Source of the DNA: Styela clava
Lineage: Eukaryota
Direction of reading: 5' to 3'
Assembly (NCBI RefSeq): GCF_964204865.1
Contig: NC_135253.1
Span: forward strand, 23,312,001-23,376,000
DNA length: 64,000 nt
A program made the position numbers and the translations under genes. Of this stretch, positions 702 to 58,980 are shown piece by piece (the first letter of the stretch is position 1; each line of letters begins with the position of its first letter). The notes under the pieces were generated by a model. It was not told the origin of the DNA, made no database searches, and saw only the letters and a program-made list of their open reading frames with translations.

Positions 702-1297
702 GCTAGAGCCCGAGCTATTGCTCGTTATTTTATACTGCACATTCCAGATCGAAGTGGTTCGCGCTAACTCCTTCGTGACTTCCTATTCTCGCTAGTACGA
801 GACTTCTCGCGAAGTGAACGAGATAACAACGCGACGTGATACATCCTTTGTTGTCGCCGACTGACTTCTGCTCCCTTAGATTGTTGTCTTACATACATAC
901 ATGTCTTGTTGGAATAGATTGTGCAACCGAATGGGCTACAAACCAGTGACTATCATTATTCGCTGTATAATTAAGGTAAGTTCTGGAGCCGCGGCTCGTT
1001 ATTTAATATCGCACTCTTCGGTTGGAAGAAAACGCGTTCATTTTGTCCACGTTAACCCTTTCGTGACTTGACCTGTCAAAAAACCTTTCCGTGGGACCAA
1101 CGAGTTAACCCGCGCAGGTGCACTTCGTTTGATGGTTGCCGACATCGCGGCGAGTCAGGTTTCTGCGTTACTCGCTGTGTATGTCCAGACTGCTCGTCCA
1201 AGAACTTCAAATCTTGTGAGCATAGACTGTGCAGCCGAATGAGTCTCAAAGCAATGGCTATCATTATTGCTGTTTTGATTAAGGTAAGCTAGAGCCC
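698..1297 (+). repeat. SL RNA gene array segment (gamma intron, alpha gene, beta promoter with gamma-type exon)
   Basis: Matches the 840-bp trimer seen at 7558-8397 and elsewhere. Confidence 0.92.
952..997 (+). ncRNA. SL RNA gene, variant alpha
   Basis: Exon ATCATTATTCGCTGTATAATTAAG, donor GTAAG at 976, AGTTCTGG resembling the tunicate Sm-like AGCUUUGG, hairpin GAGCCGCGGCTC; 3' end approximate. Confidence 0.8.
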
Positions 1298-1653
1298 TTG
1301 ATCAACAGCACGGAGCGTCTGGTGGTCTTTTCTGCCATTCCGCGGCTTTTGCCAGCCCGCTCCGAACTAGGTGTATTGGGAGTGGCCTCTCCCCCTTCGG
1401 GAATTTCTTAGAGGCCACCCCGGCGTTTCCGTAACGGTTTTTATATAATAAACCGTTACCGCTTTTGTTTGTTGCTCTGTTAGTTTATAAACTTCTGTTA
1501 GTTAATAGCCCCAATTTCTACTACTACCATAATATCTAGCTCGTTTTTATTATCCTTCAGTTAGTTTCTTTGTAGTAGGTTTCCTTAATAACTCTTAGTT
1601 GAATAACATCTGGGGTTCTACATTTCTTCTATAGTTTCTCCGTAAAGTTCTTG

Positions 1654-3066
1654 ATGTCTGCCAGGACACACCTGCCTCTCGGCAGTCAGAGTGTCTCTGG
1701 CAGACCGGCAACTGGACCATCTGACCCGCAGACCTCTTCTTCTTCGGCAGCCAAACCACTATTCTCAAGTGTCGCAGCGTCGATTCCGAAGGTCGCGAAC
1801 GTGAAGGGGATCGAAGTTCAACGTGGGGAGTCAATTGACGCCACAACATCGCAGGACATCCCCACTGTCGCCGCTTTCTACCAACTTTTTTCGTCGGTTG
1901 AGCAGCTTCGACCCTTCAGGTCACTTGTTGAAGGAGTGTTCCCAATTAGATCGGGAACTTGGAATATCACCTTCCAGGCGGCAGATGGGGGAAATCGTGA
2001 CAAGTTCCTATCTACGATAGGAAACGAGCTTGATACCCCATCTGGCCGTATTAATTTTTTTTTGCCGCGTGGTTTGGGCACGCGCATTAGTGTGCGGAGT
2101 ATCCCGACGGAGGCGACGATCGAGCAAATTACCACCATGCTCGACTCGCTGAAGTTCGGGAAGGTACGCCGCGTATACCGAATATACCTTAAAAATACAA
2201 AGGTATATAATGGCTACATTCAAGCCATTGTTGATGATTTTAACAGGAATAATTTTCCTGACTTTATCAACATAGCCGGTATGCGCTGTAAGACGTACCT
2301 CCCCGCGGAACTCTATGTAAAATCATGTTTAAACTGCTTCGCTACCGGGCATTTGGCCCGAGAGTGCATTAACCCCCCCTCTTGCCGCCTGTGCAAAAAA
2401 ACCGGGCATGTGCAGAGGGACTGCACCGACTTCCCCTCCATTCCATCTGGCAGGAAGTCTAGTGAAGCAGCACCACCGCAAATTAAATCTCCCGTACAAT
2501 CTGTTTCTAAAACCTTGATGGGGAAGGCGAAATACACCTTCGCCAAGATCTCATCAAGTGCTCCAGCAACGCCTGTACGGAAAGAAAAGGAAAATAATAA
2601 TTATAATAAGGAGAACTCTTCTAGTAAGACTGGTAATTTTCTCAGTCGGGTTACAGTTGATGTCCATCCTGTCCCGACCGAGATACACGATATTACCGAC
2701 TCTCTAGAGTCGGAAAATATGGGAGATAAAATTAATAGGGTTTTAAATAATGGTAGTGGTCCTGGAAAGGACTCGGCTAACCTGGAAGAAAACAGCGACG
2801 ATGATGAGAGCTCTCTGGAAGCTGACTTACTTAATATAGCCAAACTAACAGAGTGCTCGGAAGAAGAACACGTGTCTTTTCGCGAGAAGATACGCATCCA
2901 TCGTAAATCCAAGGAGCCGGGTCCGGACTGGGACTACTCCAAAATTGAAAAGCCTTCGATTCTCAGGGACGAGAAGAGGGGACGCGAGAGCTCGTCTTCG
3001 GACGCGTCATCAGCTCTCCCCCCCCGTAAATCCCGGGGTCTTTCAGAACCATCGGCCGGTGAATAA
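1654..3066 (+). CDS. A1 ORF1, Gag-like nucleic-acid-binding protein
   Basis: ATG at 1654 (track starts at TTG 1651); knuckles CLNCFATGHLAREC and CRLCKKTGHVQRDC; low-complexity C-terminus. Confidence 0.93.
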   Translation: MSARTHLPLGSQSVSGRPATGPSDPQTSSSSAAKPLFSSVAASIPKVANVKGIEVQRGESIDATTSQDIPTVAAFYQLFSSVEQLRPFRSLVEGVFPIRSGTWNITFQAADGGNRDKFLSTIGNELDTPSGRINFFLPRGLGTRISVRSIPTEATIEQITTMLDSLKFGKVRRVYRIYLKNTKVYNGYIQAIVDDFNRNNFPDFINIAGMRCKTYLPAELYVKSCLNCFATGHLARECINPPSCRLCKKTGHVQRDCTDFPSIPSGRKSSEAAPPQIKSPVQSVSKTLMGKAKYTFAKISSSAPATPVRKEKENNNYNKENSSSKTGNFLSRVTVDVHPVPTEIHDITDSLESENMGDKINRVLNNGSGPGKDSANLEENSDDDESSLEADLLNIAKLTECSEEEHVSFREKIRIHRKSKEPGPDWDYSKIEKPSILRDEKRGRESSSSDASSALPPRKSRGLSEPSAGE

Positions 3067-3222
3067 TAAACCATAGCTCCAAGTTTTCATAATCCCTCTT
3101 TTCTGTTTTTTCTATGCTGGTGGATTAACATCCACAATAACCATTTTGATTAATCGTACTATACCAACTGTGCGTAATTTATTGAGTGGTATAATATATA
3201 ATTATTACCCAAATCTCTTTTA

Positions 3223-6200
3223 ATGGATACTTTGAGTTTAGTTTCACTCAATGTTAACGGACTGAACTCAAATAGACACAGGTTAGGCCTCTGGATACGG
3301 AGACACCAACCTGGAATAATTTCCTTGCAACAAGTACACCGTTGCAAAAAAGACGAGATTGATTCCTGGGCAGCCGACCTGGGATACACCGCACACCTCA
3401 ATACCATCCACCATGAAGTCACCTCGATGAAATATTTCAGAGCTGGGACTGGAATTCTAGTTAAAAATAACATCCCCTGTACCATTCTATCGTACAAGGT
3501 TTTAATTCCATACAGGCTCGGCCGTCTGGACTTTTTTTTCAATAGTAGCATTACATGCTTAATGAATGCTTATGTTCCTTCGGTTCGGGGCTGTACTCAG
3601 ACTGACTTCATGGTGAGGATGTGCGGTGTGTTTCAGACCCTAGACCCCCTGGACCCACTTATAATTTTAGGGGATTTTAATGCCGTCTTGGATGAGCGTG
3701 ATGTTCTAATTAAACAGAACTTCGGGCTCACCAAGGCGGAAAAAATACTTGGATCCTCTTTAAAATCTCTTGGTATGATTGATATCTTCCGCCAAAAACA
3801 TCCGGCTGGTCAGGTATATACCTGCAAAGTAGATACACAGGCGCGTAGGATTGATCGAATTTATATCTCCGATCACTACGCGGCCTGTGTGAAAGATATC
3901 TATCATATAATAAATACAGCTTCAGATCACACCCTTGCTCCAGCCCTAGTCTTGAAATCCACCTTGAAAAAGGTGGATGGAAAGGCTAGACCGAAATCTT
4001 CAACGAAGATTAGATGGGGCAAGGGTGCCTGGAGAAATAACACCTCTTTATATAGTGATCCAGAATATCGGGAAATAATAATTAATAGTTATAAAAATCT
4101 TGTTCACCGCATGGAAGAATTTTCATATATTCAAGATTGGTGGGATTTCACTAAAAATAGTATTAAAAAGAGTAGCATTGCTTTTTCCATCTATAAAGCA
4201 GATTTACATAGAAAGAAAAAGGACCATCTGGACTTTTTAATTAGAGATGGACAACATCATGCGGAAATATTAAATTTAAGAAAGGAACTTCTTCTTCACG
4301 AGTCAAAAAAATTAGAATTTATCAAATTAAAAGCACGTATTCAAGGGATGGAAGAGGGTGAAGAGCCCACCAAAATCTTCTATCAGAAACTTAAAAAAAG
4401 AGATCAGGACACCATAATTACACAACTTAAGGATAAATTCGGACAAATTAAAGAAAAACCGGAGGAAATAATTAGTATAGTCCATGACTTTTATAAGGAT
4501 CTCTGGGGAACCACATCAGATATTGATGTGGCAACTCAGGATGAACTTATAAAAGTCATGGAAACCACTCAGTTATCGAGTGATGATAACGGCCTAATTG
4601 AAAATGGAACTACTGAGGAAGAAGTCTTTTCTATAATAAAAAATATGGACAATGGCAAGTCGCCGGGTCTCGACGGCTTGTCTAAGGAATTTTACTTAGC
4701 GTTCTGGACCCTAATCAAAAAAGAACTCATAATTATAATTAATAACGTTTTATTTTCTGGCATACTGCCAGCATCATCAAAAGTAGCAAGAGTTAAACTA
4801 ATTTATAAGAAATCCGACGCTTTAGATTTGAAAAATTGGCGTCCGATTTCAAATCTAAACGTCGATTATAAAATCATCACAAAACTTCTTTCTAGGCGCC
4901 TTTTAAATTCCTTCTCTGGCATAATTAGTCCGACCCAGAAAAGTACCATTCTGGGTCGGTCTATCTTTGATGTGCATTATAATATCACAAGTGCACTCAA
5001 TTATGCCAAATACACTAATAGTCCGTATTTCATTGTTTCCATTGATAATCTCAAGGCGTTTGACATGGTTAATCATAATTATCTTTTGAGACTTCTCGAA
5101 AGCATTAACCTATGTCCAAGCGCCTTGAGATTGATAAAATCCATTTACACCGGCATTACCAGCATCATTGAGGTAAATGGGGCCTTCACCAAAAAAATTA
5201 ACATACTGAGAGGCATCCGTCAAGGGTGTCCTCTTAGTATGTTACTCTACACCATCAATGTGGAGCCCCTCAGCCGATGTGTAATCAATAATAAATTAAT
5301 AAAAGGTATTCGTATTGGTAATTTCACCCACAAATTGGATCAGTATGCGGACGACGCAACTTTTGTTGTGTCGGACGCATACTCGATTGATGCTATTTTT
5401 AATAACTTGGAGCTCTTTCGTCTAGCCACAGGGCAGCGGATCAACAGAGAAAAAACCTCCATCCTCTGTACTAATGATAGGGCGAAGGAGATTCTATCTT
5501 TTTTCCCCTATCATAGATACATAAAGGACCATATTAAAATCCTTGGAATCTACTTCGGTGAAAACCAAATTAATATAACTTGGAGCGAGAAGGTCTCCAA
5601 GATCGAACAAATAATTAATTTTAATCGGTCTAGATCCCTATCCTGGTACGGCAAGATCTTGGTTATCAATTCCTTGATCTTGTCTCAGGTTATTTTTAGC
5701 GCGAGGTCGGTCCCCATACCACCTCCTGTCATAAAATATATTGATCGCAAGATCTTCTCTTACCTCTGGATCTCTGAGCCTATGGAAGTATTGGGCCGGC
5801 GGATCCTCCGGAACGGTAAATCTATAGGTGGAATGGGTGTTCCCTGTCTTAACACCAAGATAGTTGCTTGCCAGGCTGAACGTTTCCAACAACTGGCCTC
5901 TCTTGTTAATCCCACACAATTGTGGCATAGAGAGGCCCAGTTCAGCCTTGGCAGTAAAATAATCCAGGTTAATCCTGGTTTGTTTAGCAACTCGATACCC
6001 CATTCCATCACCGTTCCGGAATCATGGCTGAAAGCCTTCAACACATTTCGTGTTTTGGGGGCTAAAGGCCATGATTGGGATTCTGCCGGTCTAGCTTCCA
6101 TATATAGGACCCTCATGAGTGAAAGAGAAGAAACTCCTCCATCTAATATTAACTGGGAGCGTGTCCACCTTTTGGACCGCTCCCTCAGGATTCATTTTAG

Positions 6201-6726
6201 TAACCCCGAAAGGGAAATTTCTTTCAGGACCGTCCGAAACGGGTTCTTATTTGGACAACGTCGGGCGGGAACCGGTTTTAAATACCATAAATTAAATAAC
6301 CGGCTGCTTAAACTTACTTGTAAGTTTTGTCGCCATGGAGTGGATAACACTCAACATCTCTTTTTAGAATGCAAGCCCTGCCTAAGCATGGCATCCGAAT
6401 TATCCAGAATCTTAAATAAAATCTGTTCGAGTCCTGTAAGTGTTTGTATGGATGATATATTCTACAACACTTACAGTGATAACCATACTCTCGCGGTCTT
6501 GAAAATTTTTCAAATTTTCAAGGTTTTTGTGATTAAAACAAAAAAGATTCTGGATAAGGAAGACCGCTATGCGAAGGAGGGCGACGCGAATAATATAATA
6601 AAATCAGTTATTACTGATTTTAACGAACATCTTCTGGCACGTGAGTTAAAGTATGGGGACGTGACCATCTATGATCTCGTTCCTAATTGGAAAGAGATTC
6701 TTTCTGGTTACGATTCCCATACATAA
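3223..6726 (+). CDS. A1 ORF2, APE endonuclease + reverse transcriptase + C-terminal Zn finger
   Basis: SLNVNG, GDFN, RIDRIY, SDH (APE); KSPGLDG, NWRPI, GIRQGCPLS, YADD (RT); CKFC..H..C; L1/Tx1-type architecture. Confidence 0.96.
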   Translation: MDTLSLVSLNVNGLNSNRHRLGLWIRRHQPGIISLQQVHRCKKDEIDSWAADLGYTAHLNTIHHEVTSMKYFRAGTGILVKNNIPCTILSYKVLIPYRLGRLDFFFNSSITCLMNAYVPSVRGCTQTDFMVRMCGVFQTLDPLDPLIILGDFNAVLDERDVLIKQNFGLTKAEKILGSSLKSLGMIDIFRQKHPAGQVYTCKVDTQARRIDRIYISDHYAACVKDIYHIINTASDHTLAPALVLKSTLKKVDGKARPKSSTKIRWGKGAWRNNTSLYSDPEYREIIINSYKNLVHRMEEFSYIQDWWDFTKNSIKKSSIAFSIYKADLHRKKKDHLDFLIRDGQHHAEILNLRKELLLHESKKLEFIKLKARIQGMEEGEEPTKIFYQKLKKRDQDTIITQLKDKFGQIKEKPEEIISIVHDFYKDLWGTTSDIDVATQDELIKVMETTQLSSDDNGLIENGTTEEEVFSIIKNMDNGKSPGLDGLSKEFYLAFWTLIKKELIIIINNVLFSGILPASSKVARVKLIYKKSDALDLKNWRPISNLNVDYKIITKLLSRRLLNSFSGIISPTQKSTILGRSIFDVHYNITSALNYAKYTNSPYFIVSIDNLKAFDMVNHNYLLRLLESINLCPSALRLIKSIYTGITSIIEVNGAFTKKINILRGIRQGCPLSMLLYTINVEPLSRCVINNKLIKGIRIGNFTHKLDQYADDATFVVSDAYSIDAIFNNLELFRLATGQRINREKTSILCTNDRAKEILSFFPYHRYIKDHIKILGIYFGENQINITWSEKVSKIEQIINFNRSRSLSWYGKILVINSLILSQVIFSARSVPIPPPVIKYIDRKIFSYLWISEPMEVLGRRILRNGKSIGGMGVPCLNTKIVACQAERFQQLASLVNPTQLWHREAQFSLGSKIIQVNPGLFSNSIPHSITVPESWLKAFNTFRVLGAKGHDWDSAGLASIYRTLMSEREETPPSNINWERVHLLDRSLRIHFSNPEREISFRTVRNGFLFGQRRAGTGFKYHKLNNRLLKLTCKFCRHGVDNTQHLFLECKPCLSMASELSRILNKICSSPVSVCMDDIFYNTYSDNHTLAVLKIFQIFKVFVIKTKKILDKEDRYAKEGDANNIIKSVITDFNEHLLARELKYGDVTIYDLVPNWKEILSGYDSHT

Positions 6727-7495
6727 GTCTCGCGTGCCAATTATTATATTATCTAAATAATAGTATTGGGTGTCATAACAACCTGTCCTCATCTCGATTG
6801 CTACCTAGTAACTCTATTACTTTGATAATAAGATCACCAGTTGAAAATAACTAGGTGTAATATAGTTACCATTAACATTAGGCAAACAAATAGTTAATAA
6901 AACGCCACGTACACCTATCTACCTGGCAACCTTTATTATTATTTAATTTATACTCTTATTTATTTTTGTTATCTTCTTCTCTCTTTTATAGCCCTTTCCT
7001 CTCCATCATTTTCTTTCTAACTCTTTTCTTCGTCAATCTGACTCTTTTTCTTCCATTTCTTACCTGCCTGGCCAAGACGGAATACTCGCCACTAGAGGGT
7101 TCAATGAGTGTGCATCAGGGTGCATTTCTCCGAACCCTCCCATGTGGCGGGAAATGTTTCGTCGAGGCCAGGCGTTCTGTTAATCTTTACCTTTTATTTT
7201 TCAGAAAAAGAAAGACCATCTAAAAGCCTCCCCTGCAACAAGTAAGTATAAAAAAGTAAGTATCGGTGGGTTGAGGCCTACTTAAAAAAAAAAAAAAAAA
7301 AAAGTAAGCTAGCGCCCGAGCTGCGGTTCGGTATTTTTTATTGCATTTTCCATACTCCAATTCGTAGAATATTTCAATTCGTTCGTCCTAACCCTCTCTT
7401 ATCTTTTGGCTTTGCGCGAGACACACCGCGGGCGGGCCTCGTTTGTTGTCGCCGACTTCTGCTTCTCGTTTTAGTATTCATTCGTACGCTTTGGC

Positions 7496-8171: not shown

Positions 8172-8458
8172 TATTTTTTATTGCATTTTCCATACTCCAA
8201 TTCGTAGAATATTTCAATTCGTTCGTCCTAACCCTCTCTTATCTTTTGGCTTTGCGCGAGACACACCGCGGGCGGGCCTCGTTTGTTGTCGCCGACTTCT
8301 GCTTCTCGTTTTAGTATTCATTCGTACGCTTTGGCATAGATCGTGCAACCGAATGGGCTTCAAAACATTGGAAATCATTATTGCTGTTTTGATTAAGGCA
8401 ACCCCTCACCGGGTTAGGCCCTCGACAGCAACGAAGCAAGAAGAAAAGGAAGAAGAAG

Positions 8459-11096: not shown

Positions 11097-12884
11097 GCAA
11101 CCCCTCACCGGGTTAGGCCCTCGACAGCAACGAAGCAAGAAGAAAAGGAAGAAGAAGATGAACTACGCCGAAGCCGCCTCAACAACGCCTACACCTACAA
11201 GCGAAGAATCGACTGCACCGACTACACGACCTCGCACTCTGTTCCTGACAACCACCAAAGACCTGGACTTCCCTCGACTGTTCGACATCCTCAAGACCGA
11301 CTCAGCATCCCAAAACTACGTCGACAACATCACGGGACTGTTCGAGGGAAGAAAAGGTCAGTGGATATGTACTTTTGCCGCCACCGACGACCCCAACTCT
11401 AGCTGTCGCGAGCAATTCTTGCACGACACAAAGGGTGAAATAAGAGTTTTAGACGGTGCTATTACGGTATCCATGCCAACCGAAGCACCAGTCCGAATAT
11501 CCATTCGAGGGATACCGGGTGAAACTTCCTACAGCAAGGCCGTGTCGACAATCGAACGACTGCAGTGCGGAAAAGTCCGGAATGCCACCAGAAACTGGTA
11601 TAGAGGTACGTCCATTTATAACGGATACACTTCCTTTTTTATTGAAAATTTTAAAAAGGACAGGTTACCAGATTACTTGGTCATCGACGGGAAAAGCTGC
11701 AAAACTTACCTGCCCAGGGAATTATACGTGCCAACCTGTGGTAGGTGTTTGAAATCCGGTCACAACTTCACCGAATGCGAAAGCGAACCAGTCTGTCGCT
11801 ACTGCAAACAACTGGGCCATCTTTTAAAAGAGTGTCCATCCAGAAGGAAAGAATTTCCATCAATTTCCGGATCTACATGGACCTTTCCAAGACGTCAAAA
11901 ACAGCAATCAGAAAACCCACCTTTTTCGGAACAACCAAGTAACCAAAATGCTTCACATCCTGCAACAGTATCGGATTTACAAAATGCTACACAGCCTGGA
12001 CTAATTTCGGATTTACAAAACAACCAAAATGCCGTACAACCTACAAAACCGGATATACCAAACGATCAAATGGATTTACAACCTGAATCGACCACTCTTA
12101 CTCCGCATGACAACAGGATTGATCCAACCTCGAATGTGATCGAATTTTCCTCTTCCACCGAATCAACCGACTTAAAAGAAATCAGCAACTGGTCGGAGTG
12201 CGAGAATGTGGGAAGTGTTATAAGCCCTCTGTCAACACCGCCGAGTCAGCCGCAACTCAAACAAACAAGGCAATCTTCCAGACTCAAACAGTCATCGACG
12301 ATTGGAAACACCCCGTTTCATCCTACATCCAAAGGCAACCCTTATGTAAAAGTGATGGTGCACAACATCCAGCCACCGGACTTAACAACATCTTCCGTCT
12401 TCTCCACTGCACCTGATGAAATATCCTCCGCACCGGCTAATCTGGAATACAACAAATCAAAATCCAAAACCGTGGACTTACCTGCCGCAAATCTTGACAA
12501 TTCGGATTATGCTATTAAAAGAAGCCGTGAAGACACGTCATCGGACTCGTCATTTTCAACCACTTTAGAATTTAGACTTGTTGGCAAAAAGAAAAAATAG
12601 TTGTAAGTTAATTCGGACCCCACAAATCAAAATTCTGTAATCTGGACATTTAATTCGGCCTTTAAACATCGAGCGTAAAACAAACTGCCCAGTTGATGGC
12701 ATAAAACTCAACTTGATAATACCATCCTACTTATAGCGGGTGTGATGAATGGAAGACTACCTCTTCATGTGGTATATAAAATGGTGATCTCTATGGCAAA
12801 GAGAAGGGATCCAAATAACTTCCGTCGGCATAGTCTGGGTATGAAGGCAATTGGGCTGGATTCCAGACTTTGTCGTTCTGATCC

Positions 12885-19786: not shown

Positions 19787-19790
<4 letters not shown>

Positions 19791-20015
19791 GCTTGTCTCG
19801 GCGCACTTACCTTCAACAGCAGACAGCTGGAGTCGTTTGGGCCTCAAAACCCCGCTCCAGTCAGTCTAGTTTGGGGGAGGCCCTCCCGCCGCGTTATCGC
19901 ATAGGGCCTCTTCGTCAGCTTATAACAGATATTTGAGAGTCATTTTGAGTGTTTTCGGACTATAAATCAGGAAAGGAAAGCTTCTTTATTAGCACATTTC
20001 GGACTATATAGAAGC

Positions 20016-28499: not shown

Positions 28500-28789
28500 G
28501 CTAGAGCCCGAGCTATTGCTCGTTATTTTATACTGCACATTCCAGATCGAAGTGGTTCGCGCTAACTCCTTCGTGACTTCTTATTCTCGCTAGTACGAGA
28601 CTTCTCGCGAAGTGAACGAGATAACAACGCGACGTGATACATCCTTTGTTGTCGCCGACTGACTTCTGCTCCCTTAGATTGTTGTCTTACATACATACAT
28701 GTCTTGTTGGAATAGATTGTGCAACCGAATGGGCTACAAACCAGTGACTATCATTATTCGCTGTATATTTAAGGTAAGTTCTGGAGCCG
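28496..28789 (+). repeat. SL array segment (gamma intron; alpha gene interrupted by B2)
   Basis: Alpha exon 28750-28773 (one substitution), then GTAAGTTCTGGAGCCG and B2. Confidence 0.9.
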
Positions 28790-28852
28790 TCCTCGGTTCT
28801 CGGAGCTTTACCTAAACAGCCGGAGAAAATCAACACAAATAAGCAAAGAAAT

Positions 28853-35095: not shown

Positions 35096-35718
35096 TTATT
35101 TTATACTGCACATTCCAGATCGAAGTGGTTCGCGCTAACTCCTTCGTGACTTCTTATTCTCGCTAGTACGAGACTTCTCGCGAAGTGAACGAGATAACAA
35201 CGCGACGTGATACATCCTTTGTTGTCGCCGACTGACTTCTGCTCCCTTAGATTGTTGTCTTACATACATACATGTCTTGTTGGAATAGATTGTGCAACCG
35301 AATGGGCTACAAACCAGTGACTATCATTATTCGCTGTATAATTAAGGTAAGCTAGAGCCTTATTGATCAACAGCACGGAGCGTCTGGTAGTTTTTTCTGC
35401 CATTCCGCGGCTTTTGCCAGCCCGCTCCGAACTAGGTGTATTGGGAGTGGCCTCTCCCCCTTCGGGAATTTCTTAGAGGCCACCCCGGCGTTTCCGTAAC
35501 GGTTTTTATATATTAAACCGTTACCGCTTTTGTTTGTTGCTCTGTTAGTTTATAAACTTCTGTTAGTTAATAGCCCTAATTTCTACTACTACCATAATAT
35601 CTAGCTCGTTTTTATTATCCTTCAGTTAGTTTATTTGTAGTAGGTTTCCTGAACAACTCTTAGTTGAATAACATCTGGGGTTCCACATTTCTTCTATAGT
35701 TTCTCCGTAAAGTTCTTG

Positions 35719-40764: not shown

Positions 40765-41329
40765 GTCTCGCGTGCCAATTATTATATTATCTAAATAATA
40801 GTATTGGGTGTCATAACAACCTGTCCTCATCTCGATTGCTACCTAGTAACTATATTACTTTGATAATAAGATCACCAGTTGAATAAAACTAGGTGTAATA
40901 TAGTTATCATTAACATTAGGCAAACAAATAGTTAATAAAACGCCACATACACCTACCTACCTGGCAACCTTTATTATTATTATTATTATTATTTAATTTA
41001 TACTCTTGATTATTTTTGTTATCTTCTTCTCTCTTTTATAGCCCTTTCCTCTCTATCATTTTCTTTCTAACTCTTTTCTTCGTCAATCTGACTCTTTTTC
41101 TTCCATATCTTACCTGCCTGGCCAAGACGGAATACTCGCCACTAGAGGGTTCAATGAGTGTGCATCAGGGTGCATTTCTCCGAACCCTCCCATGTGGCGG
41201 GAAATGTTTCGTCGAGGCCAGGCGTTCTGTTAATCTTTACCTTTTATTTTTCAGAAAAAGAAAGACCATCTAAAAGCCTCCCCTGCAACAAGTAAGTATA
41301 AAAAAGTAAGTATCGGTGGGTTGAGGCCT

Positions 41330-41362
<33 letters not shown>

Positions 41363-41364
41363 TG

Positions 41365-41404
<40 letters not shown>

Positions 41405-41713
41405 GCTAGAGCCCTTGATCAACAGCACGGAGCGTCTGGTAGTCTTTTTCTGCCATTCAGCGGCTTTGCCAGCCCGCTCCGGTTTAGGTGTATTGGGAGT
41501 GGCCTCTCCCCCTTGGGAATTTCTTAGAGGCCACCCCTGGCGTTTCCGTAACGATTTTTTTCTTTGTTAATCGTTACCGCTTTGTTTTGTTATAACCCTC
41601 AGTTAGTTTATAGTCCTAAGTTCAACTACCTTCGTGAGCAGAATAGTTTTAATTAACATATAGTTGCTTCTTGTAGTTACTCTCTCTAATACTCGGTGTC
41701 AAAATATTTCTTC

Positions 41714-43168
41714 ATGTCTGCCAGGACTCATCTGCCGTTAGGCACTGATGTCTCTGGCAGGCCGTCGACTACTACTGTTTCGCCAACCGTTCGGACTTCT
41801 TCAACGGCGCATGTGCCTCTTTTTTCAAAGATGGTCGCGTCTGTACCGAAGGTTGCTGGCGTGAAGGGACTAGAAGTGGAACGCAGCGATTCAGTGGACG
41901 CAGCTACATCACAAGACATCCCCACTGTTGCCGCGTTCTACGATCTATTTACATCAGTCGCCCAACTCCGCCCCTTCAAATCACTGGTGGAAGGCGTTTT
42001 TCCTATCAGACAGGGAATCTGGAATGTTACATTCAAGTCCGAAGGAGGTAAGATACGCGACAGGTTTTTATCAAGCCAAGCAAACCTGGTCGAGACTCCT
42101 TGTGGCAATATTAGGTTTTCCCTCCCACGTGGTCCTGGAACTCGAATTAGCATTCGCGGTATCCCGACTGAAGCGAAAGTGGAGCAATTAAAATCCATGC
42201 TCAACTCGTTGAAGTTCGGGGAAGTCCGCCGAGTTTTTAAAATAAACCTGAAGAACACCCAGGTCTACAACGGCTACATCCAAGCCATTGTTGACGACTT
42301 GGATGTTAATAAATTTCCTGATTTTATAATGGTAGGCGGCTTACGTTGCAAAACGTATCTCCCCGCCGAATTATATGTCAAATCCTGCCTCAATTGCTTT
42401 AAAACCGGGCACCTTGCTCGCGAGTGCACTGATCCACCATCGTGCCGACTTTGTAAAAAGTCTGGCCACTTGCAGAAAGATTGCCCGGAATATCCTTCCA
42501 TACCATCTGGAAAGCAGCAAAGCGAGGCTGTGATACGCGAATCTTCTGTCAAACCGCGCGATAATACACCTGAATTAACACCATCCAGACCCTTGGTGAG
42601 GACCTCCAGATACAGCTTCTCTAAGGTCCCATCAAGTGTTCCAGTTGCACATGTTCAGGTAGATAAGCAAGCCGGTTCAAGGAAATCTCCTGCTAAAAGT
42701 AATAGTAATAAATATTCCAGTCGGGTTACAGTCGATATACATCCTGTCCCGACTGGTGTTGTAGAAATATCGGATTCCCTAGAATCTGAACAAACAGGAA
42801 ACAATAATAATAGATCTGAAAATAATAGCGTTCCAGTATCGGAGCCGGAAAAATCGGAGGATAACATAGAGGATGAAATTGATACATCTAGCGAGAAGGC
42901 GAGTACTCTGGAAGTTGGTATCCTTGATACCGCTGAATTTTCAGAGAGCTCTGATGATAACCACGAATACTTTCGTAAAAAACTTCGTGGTCATCAGAAA
43001 CCGAAAGAGCCGGGCCCGGACTGGAACTTCTCTAACATCGAGGAACCATCTGGCTTTAGGGATGAGAAGAGGGGACGGGAGAGCACGGCGTCAGACGTCT
43101 CTTCAGCTCTCCCCCCCAGAAAATCCCGGATTTTTTCAGAATCACCTACCGGTGATAATAATAAATAG
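41714..43168 (+). CDS. A2 ORF1
   Basis: ATG at 41714 (MSARTHLPLG, as in A1); CLNCFKTGHLAREC, CRLCKKSGHLQKDC. Confidence 0.92.
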   Translation: MSARTHLPLGTDVSGRPSTTTVSPTVRTSSTAHVPLFSKMVASVPKVAGVKGLEVERSDSVDAATSQDIPTVAAFYDLFTSVAQLRPFKSLVEGVFPIRQGIWNVTFKSEGGKIRDRFLSSQANLVETPCGNIRFSLPRGPGTRISIRGIPTEAKVEQLKSMLNSLKFGEVRRVFKINLKNTQVYNGYIQAIVDDLDVNKFPDFIMVGGLRCKTYLPAELYVKSCLNCFKTGHLARECTDPPSCRLCKKSGHLQKDCPEYPSIPSGKQQSEAVIRESSVKPRDNTPELTPSRPLVRTSRYSFSKVPSSVPVAHVQVDKQAGSRKSPAKSNSNKYSSRVTVDIHPVPTGVVEISDSLESEQTGNNNNRSENNSVPVSEPEKSEDNIEDEIDTSSEKASTLEVGILDTAEFSESSDDNHEYFRKKLRGHQKPKEPGPDWNFSNIEEPSGFRDEKRGRESTASDVSSALPPRKSRIFSESPTGDNNK

Positions 43169-46858: not shown

Positions 46859-47447
46859 ATCATCTCGCGTGCCTGATAACTGCTGAGGTATAATGAACCA
46901 ACATCTATAACCTACCTCCATTGCTACATAATGCTGTAGTACTCCTCCAATACTTATCCCAACCTAAATATTGTTAGTATAATAAAATCTGGGGTAACAC
47001 AGGAACATGATAATTAATAAAGCGAATTATAACGCCACGCACCTAACTGGCTACTTTATTATCATTTAATTTATGATCTCACTTCTTTTTTATTATTAAT
47101 TTCTTCACCCTTCTTTTATAACCCTTTCTCTCCATCATTTTCTTTCTAATCCCTTTACTTCGTCATTCTGACTCTTTCTCTTCTATTTCCTTTTTGCCTG
47201 GCCAAAACGAAATACTCGCCACTAGAGGGTTCAATGAGTGTGCATCAGGGTGCATTTCTCCGAACCCTCACATGTGGCGGGAAATATTTTGTGGCGGTCA
47301 GGCGTTCTGTTAACTGTCTCCTATATTTTTCAGAAAAAGAAAGACCATCTACAAGCCTCCCCTGCAACAAGTAAGTATTAAAAGGTAAGTACCGGTGGGT
47401 TGAGGCCTACCATAAAAAAAAAAAAAAAAAAAAAAATAAAAATAAAA

Positions 47448-50131: not shown

Positions 50132-50501
50132 GTAAGCTAGAGCCCTTGATCAACAGCACGGAGCGTCTGGTGGTCTTTTCTGCCATTCCGCGGCTTTTGC
50201 CAGCCCGCTCCGAACTAGGTGTATTGGGAGTGGCCTCTCCCCCTTCGGGAATTTCTTAGAGGCCACCCCGGCGTTTCCGTAACGGTTTTTATATAATAAA
50301 CCGTTACCGCTTTTGTTTGTTGCTCTGTTAGTTTATAAACTTCTGTTAGTTAATAGCCCCAATTTCTACTACTACCATAATATCTAGCTCGTTTTTATTA
50401 TCCTTCAGTTAGTTTCTTTGTAGTAGGTTTCCTTAATAACTCTTAGTTGAATAACATCTGGGGTTCTACATTTCTTCTATAGTTTCTCCGTAAAGTTCTT
50501 G

Positions 50502-57001: not shown

Positions 57002-58601
57002 GTAACCCCTCACCGGGTTAGGCCCTCGACAGCAACGAAGCAAGAAGAAAAGGAAGAAGAAGAATATGAACTACGCCGAAGCCGCCTCGACAACGCCTAC
57101 ACCTACAAGCGAAGAAACGACTGCACCGACTACACGACCTCGCACTCTGTTCCTGACAACCACCAAAGACCTGGACTTCCCTCGACTGTTCGACATCCTC
57201 AAGACCGATTCAGCGTCCCGAAACTACGTCGACAACATCACGGGACTGTTCGAGGGAAGAAAAGGTCAGTGGATATGTACTTTTGCCGCCACCGACGACC
57301 CCAACTCTAGCTGTCGCGAGAAATTCTTGCACGACACAAAGGGTGAAATAAGAGTTTCAGACGGTGCTATTACGGTATCGCTGCCAACCGAAGCACCAGT
57401 CCGAATATCCATTCGAGGGATACCGGGTGAAACTTCCTACAGCAAGGCCGTGTCGACAATCGAACGACTGCAGTGCGGAAAAGTCCGGAATGCCACCAGA
57501 AACTGGTACAGAGGTACGTCCATTTATAACGGATACACTTCCTTTTTTATTGAAAATTTTAAAAAGGACAGGTTACCAGATTACTTGGTCATCGACGGGA
57601 AAAGCTGCAAAACTTACCTGCCCAGGGAATTATACGTGCCAACCTGTGGTAGGTGTTTGAAATCCGGTCACAACTTCACCGAATGCGAAAGCGAACCAGT
57701 CTGTCGCTACTGCAAACAACTGGGCCATCTTTTAAAAGAGTGTCCATCCAGAAGGAAAGAATTTCCATCAATTTCCGGATCTACATGGACCTTACCAAGA
57801 CGTCAAAAACAGCAATCAGAAAACCCACCTTTTTCGGAACAACCAAGTAACCAAAATGCTTCACAACCTGCAACAGTATCGGATTTACAAAATGCTACAC
57901 AGCCTGGACTAATTTCGGATTTACAAAACAACCAAAATGCCGTACAACCTACAAAACCGGATATACCAAACGATCAAATGGATTTACAACCTGAATCGAC
58001 CACTCTTACTCCGCATGACAACAGGATTGATCCAACCTCGAATGTAATCGAATTTTCCTCTTCCACCGAATCAACCGACCTAAAAGAAATCAGCAACTGG
58101 TCGGAGTGCGAGGATGTGGGAAGCGTTATAAGCCCTCTGTCAACACCGCCGAGTCAGCCGCAACTCAAACAAACAAGGCAATCTTCCAGACTCAAACAGT
58201 CATCGACGATTGGAAACACCCCGTTTCATCCTACATCCAAAGGCAACCCTTATGTAAAAGTGATGGTGCACAACATCCAGCCACCGGAATTAACAACATC
58301 TTCCGTCTTCTCCACTGCACCTGATGAAATATCCTCCGCACCGGCTAATCTGGAATACAACAAATCAAAATCCAAAACCGAGGACTTACCTGCCAAAAAT
58401 CTTGACAATTCGGATTATACTATTAAAAGAAGCCGTGAAGAAACGTCATCAGACTCTTCATTTTCAACCACTTTAGAATTTAGACTTGTTGGCAAAAAGA
58501 AAAAATAGTTATAAGTTAATTCGGACCCCACAAATCAAAATTCTGTAATCTGGACATTTAATTCGGCCTTTAAACATCGAGCGTAAGACAAACTGCCCAG
58601 T
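57002..58601 (+). mobile_element. N1 element lacking its distal 3' UTR and poly(A)
   Basis: 3' UTR breaks at ...CTGCCCAGT and joins TTGATTAAG-GTAAGCTAGAGCCC + A1. Confidence 0.9.
57066..58508 (+). CDS. N1 ORF1 (480 aa)
   Basis: Intact ORF. Confidence 0.93.
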   Translation: MNYAEAASTTPTPTSEETTAPTTRPRTLFLTTTKDLDFPRLFDILKTDSASRNYVDNITGLFEGRKGQWICTFAATDDPNSSCREKFLHDTKGEIRVSDGAITVSLPTEAPVRISIRGIPGETSYSKAVSTIERLQCGKVRNATRNWYRGTSIYNGYTSFFIENFKKDRLPDYLVIDGKSCKTYLPRELYVPTCGRCLKSGHNFTECESEPVCRYCKQLGHLLKECPSRRKEFPSISGSTWTLPRRQKQQSENPPFSEQPSNQNASQPATVSDLQNATQPGLISDLQNNQNAVQPTKPDIPNDQMDLQPESTTLTPHDNRIDPTSNVIEFSSSTESTDLKEISNWSECEDVGSVISPLSTPPSQPQLKQTRQSSRLKQSSTIGNTPFHPTSKGNPYVKVMVHNIQPPELTTSSVFSTAPDEISSAPANLEYNKSKSKTEDLPAKNLDNSDYTIKRSREETSSDSSFSTTLEFRLVGKKKK

Positions 58602-58980
58602 TTGATTAAGGTAAGCTAGAGCCCTTGATCAACAGCACGGAGCGTCTGGTGGTCTTTTCTGCCATTCCGTGGCTTTTGCCAGCCCGCTCCGAACTAGGTG
58701 TATTGGGAGTGGCCTCTCCCCCTTCGGGAATTTCTTAGAGGCCACCCCGGCGTTTCCGTAACGGTTTTTATATAATAAACCGTTACCGCTTTTGTTTGTT
58801 GCTCTGTTAGTTTATAAACTTCTGTTAGTTAATAGCCCCAATTTCTACTACTACCATAATATCTAGCTCGTTTTTATTATCCTTCAGTTAGTTTCTTTGT
58901 AGTAGGTTTCCTTAATAACTCTTAGTTGAATAACATCTGGGGTTCTACATTTCTTCTATAGTTTCTCCGTAAAGTTCTTG

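Follow-up and report, generated by a model that had tools for sequence, protein, structure and literature searches.

A predicted leader-sequestering hairpin in retrotransposons that live inside the spliced-leader RNA genes of a sea squirt

Retrotransposons inserted in the spliced-leader (SL) RNA genes of Styela clava begin with a short segment that is antisense to the leader lying directly in front of them, which raises the question of whether this pairing is genuine, whether the element RNA contains the leader, and what purpose such a hairpin could serve. The analysed stretch of DNA (contig NC_135253.1, 64,000 nucleotides; hereafter, the window) is an array of three SL RNA gene variants, designated alpha, beta, and gamma, which differ in the middle of the leader and in the first intron bases. 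The array is invaded by poly(A) retrotransposons. Pfam domains Exo_endo_phos and RVT_1 were found in ORF2 of lineages A and B, and zf-CCHC was found in ORF1; the best solved relative of ORF2 is human LINE-1 ORF2p (E 4e-64 over residues 4-876). The elements are L1/Tx1-like LINEs with an apurinic-type (APE) endonuclease, a reverse transcriptase, and a CCHC knuckle. A reading of the sequence alone had proposed that the first bases of lineage A elements pair with the 3' half of the leader and the donor G, and that in a read-through transcript this hairpin hides the donor, so that the capped leader is not trans-spliced off, or helps 5' integration. The parts of the element in which the pairing was first seen, A1, are as follows.

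1263-1283, plus strand: spliced-leader exon carried at the 5' end of A1; its 3' half is gamma-type although the gene is beta, and the block conserved among SL genes starts at 1260.
1268-1284, plus strand: 5' arm of the hairpin, consisting of the leader 3' half and the first intron base (donor G).
1284-1296, plus strand: 13-nt gamma-type intron remnant, which is the upstream copy of the target-site duplication and forms the hairpin loop.
1296-1310, plus strand: 3' arm, the anti-leader segment; 1297 is the first base of A1.
1297-7303, plus strand: lineage A element A1, with the 5' UTR at 1297-1653 (no ATG), ORF1 at 1654-3066 (CCHC), ORF2 at 3223-6726 (APE and RT), and poly(A) at 7284-7303.
7304-7316, plus strand: downstream copy of the target-site duplication; it is beta-type, which shows that A1 sits in a beta SL gene.

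The pairing was confirmed. Positions 1268-1272 pair with 1306-1310, and positions 1275-1284 pair with 1296-1305, giving 15 bp with one G-U pair (1280/1300) and a 2-nt bulge (1273-1274). RNAfold placed this hairpin in the minimum-energy fold of a 56-nt piece (-18.1 kcal/mol, z -3.8, with 1/200 shuffles as good), as well as in the folds of 225-nt and 171-nt co-transcripts. The energy of the leader/anti-leader duplex was -19.4, compared with -10.4 +/- 2.3 for 1000 dinucleotide shuffles, none of which reached it. The fit was best to the gamma leader (-19.4, against -15.3 for beta and -13.9 for alpha). However, C1296 belongs to the intron remnant, so the element proper starts at 1297, and only donor positions -3 to +1 are paired in lineage A, whereas +2 to +4 lie in the loop. 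The same 15-mer was present at 41413-41427, 50144-50158, and 58623-58637, and a variant with one mismatch was found at 35362-35375, in the following copies.

35347-35375, plus strand: lineage A copy in an alpha gene, with a gamma-type spacer, a TT insertion, and a variant anti-leader; the hairpin with the resident alpha exon is weaker (-13.1).
41401-41427, plus strand: A2 spacer and an identical anti-leader, directly after the poly(A) of the upstream element; no leader is present in this copy.
50132-50158, plus strand: another A copy, with spacer and anti-leader after a poly(A).
58601-58637, plus strand: A copy whose carried leader remnant (last about 10 nt), spacer, and anti-leader are joined to a truncated N1 at a TTGAT microhomology.

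A2 and the copy at 50144 have no leader upstream, so those copies cannot form the hairpin. The junction in the region 58560-58640, where the N1 is 3'-truncated, is either a recombination or an aberrant 5' joining.

Every lineage A copy is preceded by the gamma-type 13-mer, and the same 13 bases of the target follow the poly(A); this is a 13-bp target-site duplication, with the first nick at the exon/intron boundary and the second at intron +13. The other lineages differ: B1 sits at about +5/+7, B2 at +5/+16, and N1 is flush with the exon. Junctions lie at intron +0 to +16 of alpha, beta, and gamma genes throughout the window and in other arrays. In addition, the A 3' UTR ends with two GTAAGTA motifs resembling 5' splice sites just before the poly(A) (7240-7283, 41290-41335, and 47370-47413), as the sequence-only reading had noted separately.

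Whether the element RNA contains the leader was addressed from genomic copies, without usable RNA data; the assembled contigs of presumed RNA runs covered SL genes and their spacers at depth 25-40 and the elements at 2-3, looked like DNA, and included no record bridging the junction. A1 lies in a beta gene, with beta upstream sequence and a beta intron after its poly(A), yet it has a gamma leader 3' half and a gamma spacer; the cDNA therefore carried those bases. On another contig (C6; C and L numbers are our labels for the contigs and loci compared), a complete exon of another SL gene is followed by a partial gamma leader, the spacer, and the element. At non-SL loci, copies of A, B1, B2, and N1 carry the leader; most begin at ATTATTGCTG or a few bases further in, and never further upstream than the block conserved among SL genes. 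Two off-target lineage A insertions (L009 on contig C2 and L013 on contig C1) abut tRNA-like sequence in the opposite orientation, immediately upstream of their carried partial leader. We also found 29 dispersed exact copies of the gamma leader fused to unrelated sequence (the reversed-pattern control gave 0), which begin at the same place, give or take three bases. We take this as the 5' end of the mature leader, 21-24 nt from the donor. These 29 copies (L069-L072 and L092-L111) are followed by A, T, or C, many continue with an acceptor-like TTTGCAG or ATTCACAG before unrelated sequence, and several form small repeat families. They may be retrocopies of trans-spliced RNAs spliced at upstream alternative acceptors, or an unknown leader-carrying repeat. 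Template switching onto SL RNA as the source of the carried leader was rejected, because the breakpoint is fixed within each lineage and the spacers diverge with the lineages.

In addition, no ATG was found in the 5' UTRs of A1, A2, B1, B2, or N1 (1263-1653, 41401-41714, 19787-20015, 28753-28852, and 8377-8458), against 5.8, 4.6, 3.7, 1.7, and 1.3 expected, respectively. This fits scanning from a cap upstream of the whole UTR and suggests cap-dependent scanning through long, highly structured leaders. Thus, the elements appear to have no promoter of their own in front of the leader, and their RNA appears to start at or within a few bases of the start site of the SL gene and to begin with the capped leader, an intact 5' splice site, and 0-17 intron bases. 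This is an inference, but a strong one.

The hairpin is not restricted to lineage A. All four leader-carrying LINE lineages in the window (A, B1, B2, and N1) have an element-encoded anti-leader segment, located within the first ~15-50 nt after the junction, as seen in the following features.

19787-19822, plus strand: B1 5' end, with the spacer at 19787-19803 followed by 19804-19822, which is antisense to the donor (CTTACCTT) and then to leader GCTGTT (AACAGCAG).
28753-28823, plus strand: B2, with an alpha-type leader, donor (28773|28774), 16-nt spacer, inner arm at 28795-28813 pairing with donor and spacer, and base arm at 28814-28823 (AAACAGCC) pairing with the leader.
8377-8433, plus strand: N1, with a gamma leader fused flush to the element (AAG|GC), an inner hairpin over the junction (8397-8420), and the anti-leader at 8423-8433, in which ACAGCAA pairs with leader TTGCTGT; the same is seen at 11122, 13797, 26571, 48344, and 57027.

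The predicted unpaired probability was about zero at -3..+1 in A, at -2..+5 in B1, at -1..+6 in B2, and at -1 to +2 and +4 to +6 of the junction in N1 (0.32 at +3). The natural alpha, beta, and gamma SL RNAs, by contrast, were predicted to be largely open at the donor and showed no comparable leader/donor stem, so no natural SL stem of this kind was found that could be mimicked. The B1 anti-donor CTTACCT(T/G) at 19806-19813 seems to have the same sequence as the 5' end of U1 snRNA, and some B1 relatives (L035, L045) read CTTACCTGG, which extends the resemblance. The lineages are old: ORF2 identity is 40% between A and B, 55% between B1 and B2, and 75% between A1 and A2.

The next question was whether the stem is maintained by selection or is a neutral relic of an old fold-back or rearrangement at the 5' junction, or a chance match. 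All lineages could have inherited one ancestral event, and the individual shuffle tests for old copies are weak. However, A1 and A2 share 91% identity over 5' UTR nt 1-170, including an identical anti-leader, against 69% for ORF1 and 77% for ORF2 at the nucleotide level. These first ~170 nt of the A-type 5' UTR form a conserved multi-hairpin module (1311-1470 and loci L010-L020; 225-nt fold z -4.6), in which the stem around 1433-1460 shows compensatory changes in L019 and has a U-rich loop resembling the U-rich site of the natural SL RNAs; B1 has the same order of motifs. In nine A-type sublineages, 95% of cells of the consensus stem are paired, and this falls to 25-50% when the partners are slid by 1-3 columns. 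Two pairs changed on both sides, and 0/500 shuffles reached the covariation score. The double changes sit in sublineages that carry a beta-like leader (L014, L019) or a further leader variant (L017, L021).

The clearest case of covariation was observed in N1. Copies with the gamma leader have ACAGCAA, whereas a ~72%-identical sublineage at five unrelated loci carries the beta leader and has ATAGCGAA, the perfect complement of TTCGCTAT. The energy preference is reciprocal: the gamma anti-leader gives -10.2 with gamma and -3.2 with beta, and the beta anti-leader gives -11.2 with beta and -8.2 with gamma. Beta-leader relatives of A changed in the same direction. A generic all-against-all matrix of duplex energies was too noisy to show covariation except in a few lineages, and the clean signal came from explicit alignments. 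Furthermore, an A-related lineage present in many copies on contig C8 (L022-L030, 4.1-4.6 Mb) has an A-type 5' UTR but no SL leader and no anti-leader, and starts behind a different, shared upstream region with a TATA-like motif (TATATAA). Its GTATTAAG|GTATAAC resembles the SL target and has been hit by other elements, with poly(A) directly in front of GTATAAC. Taken together, retention of the stem across lineages with 40% ORF2 identity, the compensatory changes in two families, the slower evolution of the segment than of the coding sequence, and its absence from the lineage without a leader make a neutral relic very unlikely. We have high confidence that the structure and the selection on it are real.

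The common architecture is a base stem with leader nt ~5-12 that encloses the rest of the leader and the exon/intron junction, and the junction itself is paired in an inner stem or in a continuation of the base stem. We infer that, because each insertion regenerates leader and donor from the target, the element cannot mutate the donor away and instead neutralises it with an antisense arm inside its own body. The hairpin would keep the splicing machinery (U1 for cis-splicing, or the SL pathway) off the leader and donor, so that the cap and the target-homologous 5' end stay on the full-length RNA, which serves both as a scanned mRNA and as the reverse-transcription template. The retained leader on the cDNA would then anneal to the target and give uniform 5' junctions, as was proposed for R2 RNAs that keep upstream 28S sequence (PMC3774820).

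Donor hiding fits B1 and B2 well, as the donor is fully paired there, but it fits A only in part, and in the L017/L021 sublineage the stem is shifted and the donor lies in a 12-nt loop. It cannot be the whole function, because N1 has AAG|GC (two copies have GT followed by AACC) and still keeps a co-varying leader pairing; something other than a canonical donor is therefore also selected. The trans-splicing part of the sequence-only interpretation is the weaker one: the co-transcript is cut at intron +13, upstream of the stem-loop and U-rich site of the SL RNA, so loss of the leader by trans-splicing may be unlikely even without a hairpin, and cis-splicing is the more realistic risk. A hairpin of about -18 kcal/mol a few bases from the cap should also hinder scanning. 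No spliced A or B retrocopies, which would prove that the donor is usable, were found among the 24 of the 29 dispersed gamma-leader copies that were compared with the window; this is compatible with masking but proves nothing. In the absence of RNA evidence, we have only moderate confidence that sequestration of the junction and donor is the main function.

A role other than splicing is possible, although we consider it less likely. The hairpin could be a stable 5'-terminal fold that protects the leader end of the template from decay, or it could mark the element's own RNA for its proteins among the many leader-bearing mRNAs; either way, full-length cDNA with a target-homologous end would be made, and 5' junctions would be precise. 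This view is supported by the fact that the universal, co-varying part is the base stem with leader nt ~5-12 and not the donor, and by the conserved multi-hairpin module of the A 5' UTR. In R2-based insertion, stable 5' folds raise insertion efficiency, which has been attributed to protection from 5' degradation (PMC11331408), and upstream target sequence on the RNA gives uniform junctions in R2 (PMC3774820). However, B1 and B2 devote a separate arm specifically to the donor and skip part of the exon, which a generic stabilising hairpin would not need, and the RNA is presumably capped already.

The anti-leader might instead act in trans, pairing with the leader strand of the target SL gene, with nascent SL RNA, or with free SL RNA, either to guide or tether integration or to interfere with the host SL RNA. 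Copies that follow a poly(A) (A2, 50144, and B1 at 19787) have a free anti-leader, and in the window each lineage mostly sits in the SL gene variant that its anti-leader matches (N1-gamma in gamma genes, B2 in an alpha gene). Nevertheless, the intramolecular stem should outcompete any trans pairing in leader-bearing RNAs, matching is not required, since A1 sits in a beta gene and another A copy in an alpha gene, and variant preference can come from the endonuclease or from homology-dependent 5' joining. We regard this explanation as improbable. The same doubt applies to a more speculative version, in which the hairpin is a guide module: as its stem has the same sequence as the DNA duplex of the target, it could exchange strands with the SL gene or pair with nascent SL RNA, and each sublineage would be directed to the SL variant it matches, which would add an RNA-guided step to the target choice and 5' joining of an APE-type LINE.

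[quoted passage not shown] The formal analogy is close, and a long hairpin follows the anti-leader where a P4 would sit. However, no ribozyme family matched in Rfam, either at the gathering score on the whole window or at E<=10 on the A and B1 5' UTRs. Only 11 nt separate the two arms, which leaves no room for P2 and P3, and dispersed copies mostly start at ATTATT..., 5 nt upstream of the stem and at the leader's own 5' end, rather than at the base of the stem. This reading is thus very unlikely. The elements studied here resemble R2 in that a site-specific LINE is co-transcribed with its target gene, element-encoded bases pair with upstream target sequence, and target sequence retained on the RNA and cDNA explains uniform 5' junctions and the propagation of junction variants. 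They differ in that the fold is a plain hairpin, the RNA keeps the target sequence up to the transcription start, the promoter is that of an SL gene, the sequestered sequence includes a splice donor, and the endonuclease is APE-type rather than restriction-like.

In the literature that could be searched, SL-gene-targeting LINEs of the L1/Tx1 type in a chordate relative were not found, an exact-string search for the leader sequences gave nothing, and no description of a leader-locking, co-evolving hairpin was found for any SL-associated or APE-type element. The elements behave like other L1/Tx1-type LINEs specific to small-RNA genes, such as Keno in U2 snRNA genes (PMC4494074), which are likewise APE-type L1-group LINEs with a zinc-knuckle ORF1 that insert at one site of multicopy genes; here, the target is the SL RNA gene, and an antisense-to-target 5' module has not, as far as we could find, been reported for Keno-like elements. 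With CRE/SLACS/CZAR of trypanosomatids and NeSL-1 of nematodes they share insertion in spliced-leader gene arrays (PMC4640811), but those elements encode a restriction-like endonuclease and probably use a different site, and to our knowledge no leader-locking hairpin has been described for them. A 5' hairpin that probably pairs the donor with leader bases may also occur as stem-loop I of natural SL RNAs in nematodes and trypanosomes; here, however, the partner strand is supplied by the transposon and not by the SL RNA.

The masking of a 5' splice site by a local hairpin is established for retroviral leaders (HIV-1 SD hairpin, PMC4974535; MLV, PMC2794156). As in those systems, a reverse-transcribing element must keep full-length RNA unspliced, and here the 5' splice site in the 5' leader also appears to be masked by a local stem supported by base-pair covariation. 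In retroviruses, both arms belong to the virus, and splicing is tuned rather than avoided, whereas here one arm is host SL-gene sequence renewed at each insertion, and no spliced product is known. The elements show an unusual answer to the problem of borrowing a host small-RNA promoter and cap when the borrowed piece ends in a strong splice donor: the answer appears to be an element-encoded antisense arm that co-evolves with the host leader variant, which gives a natural, phylogenetically supported case of host-parasite RNA pairing. It also offers a simple system for asking how 5' structures control splicing, translation, and 5'-junction formation in non-LTR retrotransposition, and the matched leader and anti-leader provide a marker for tracing which SL variant each subfamily uses as its home.
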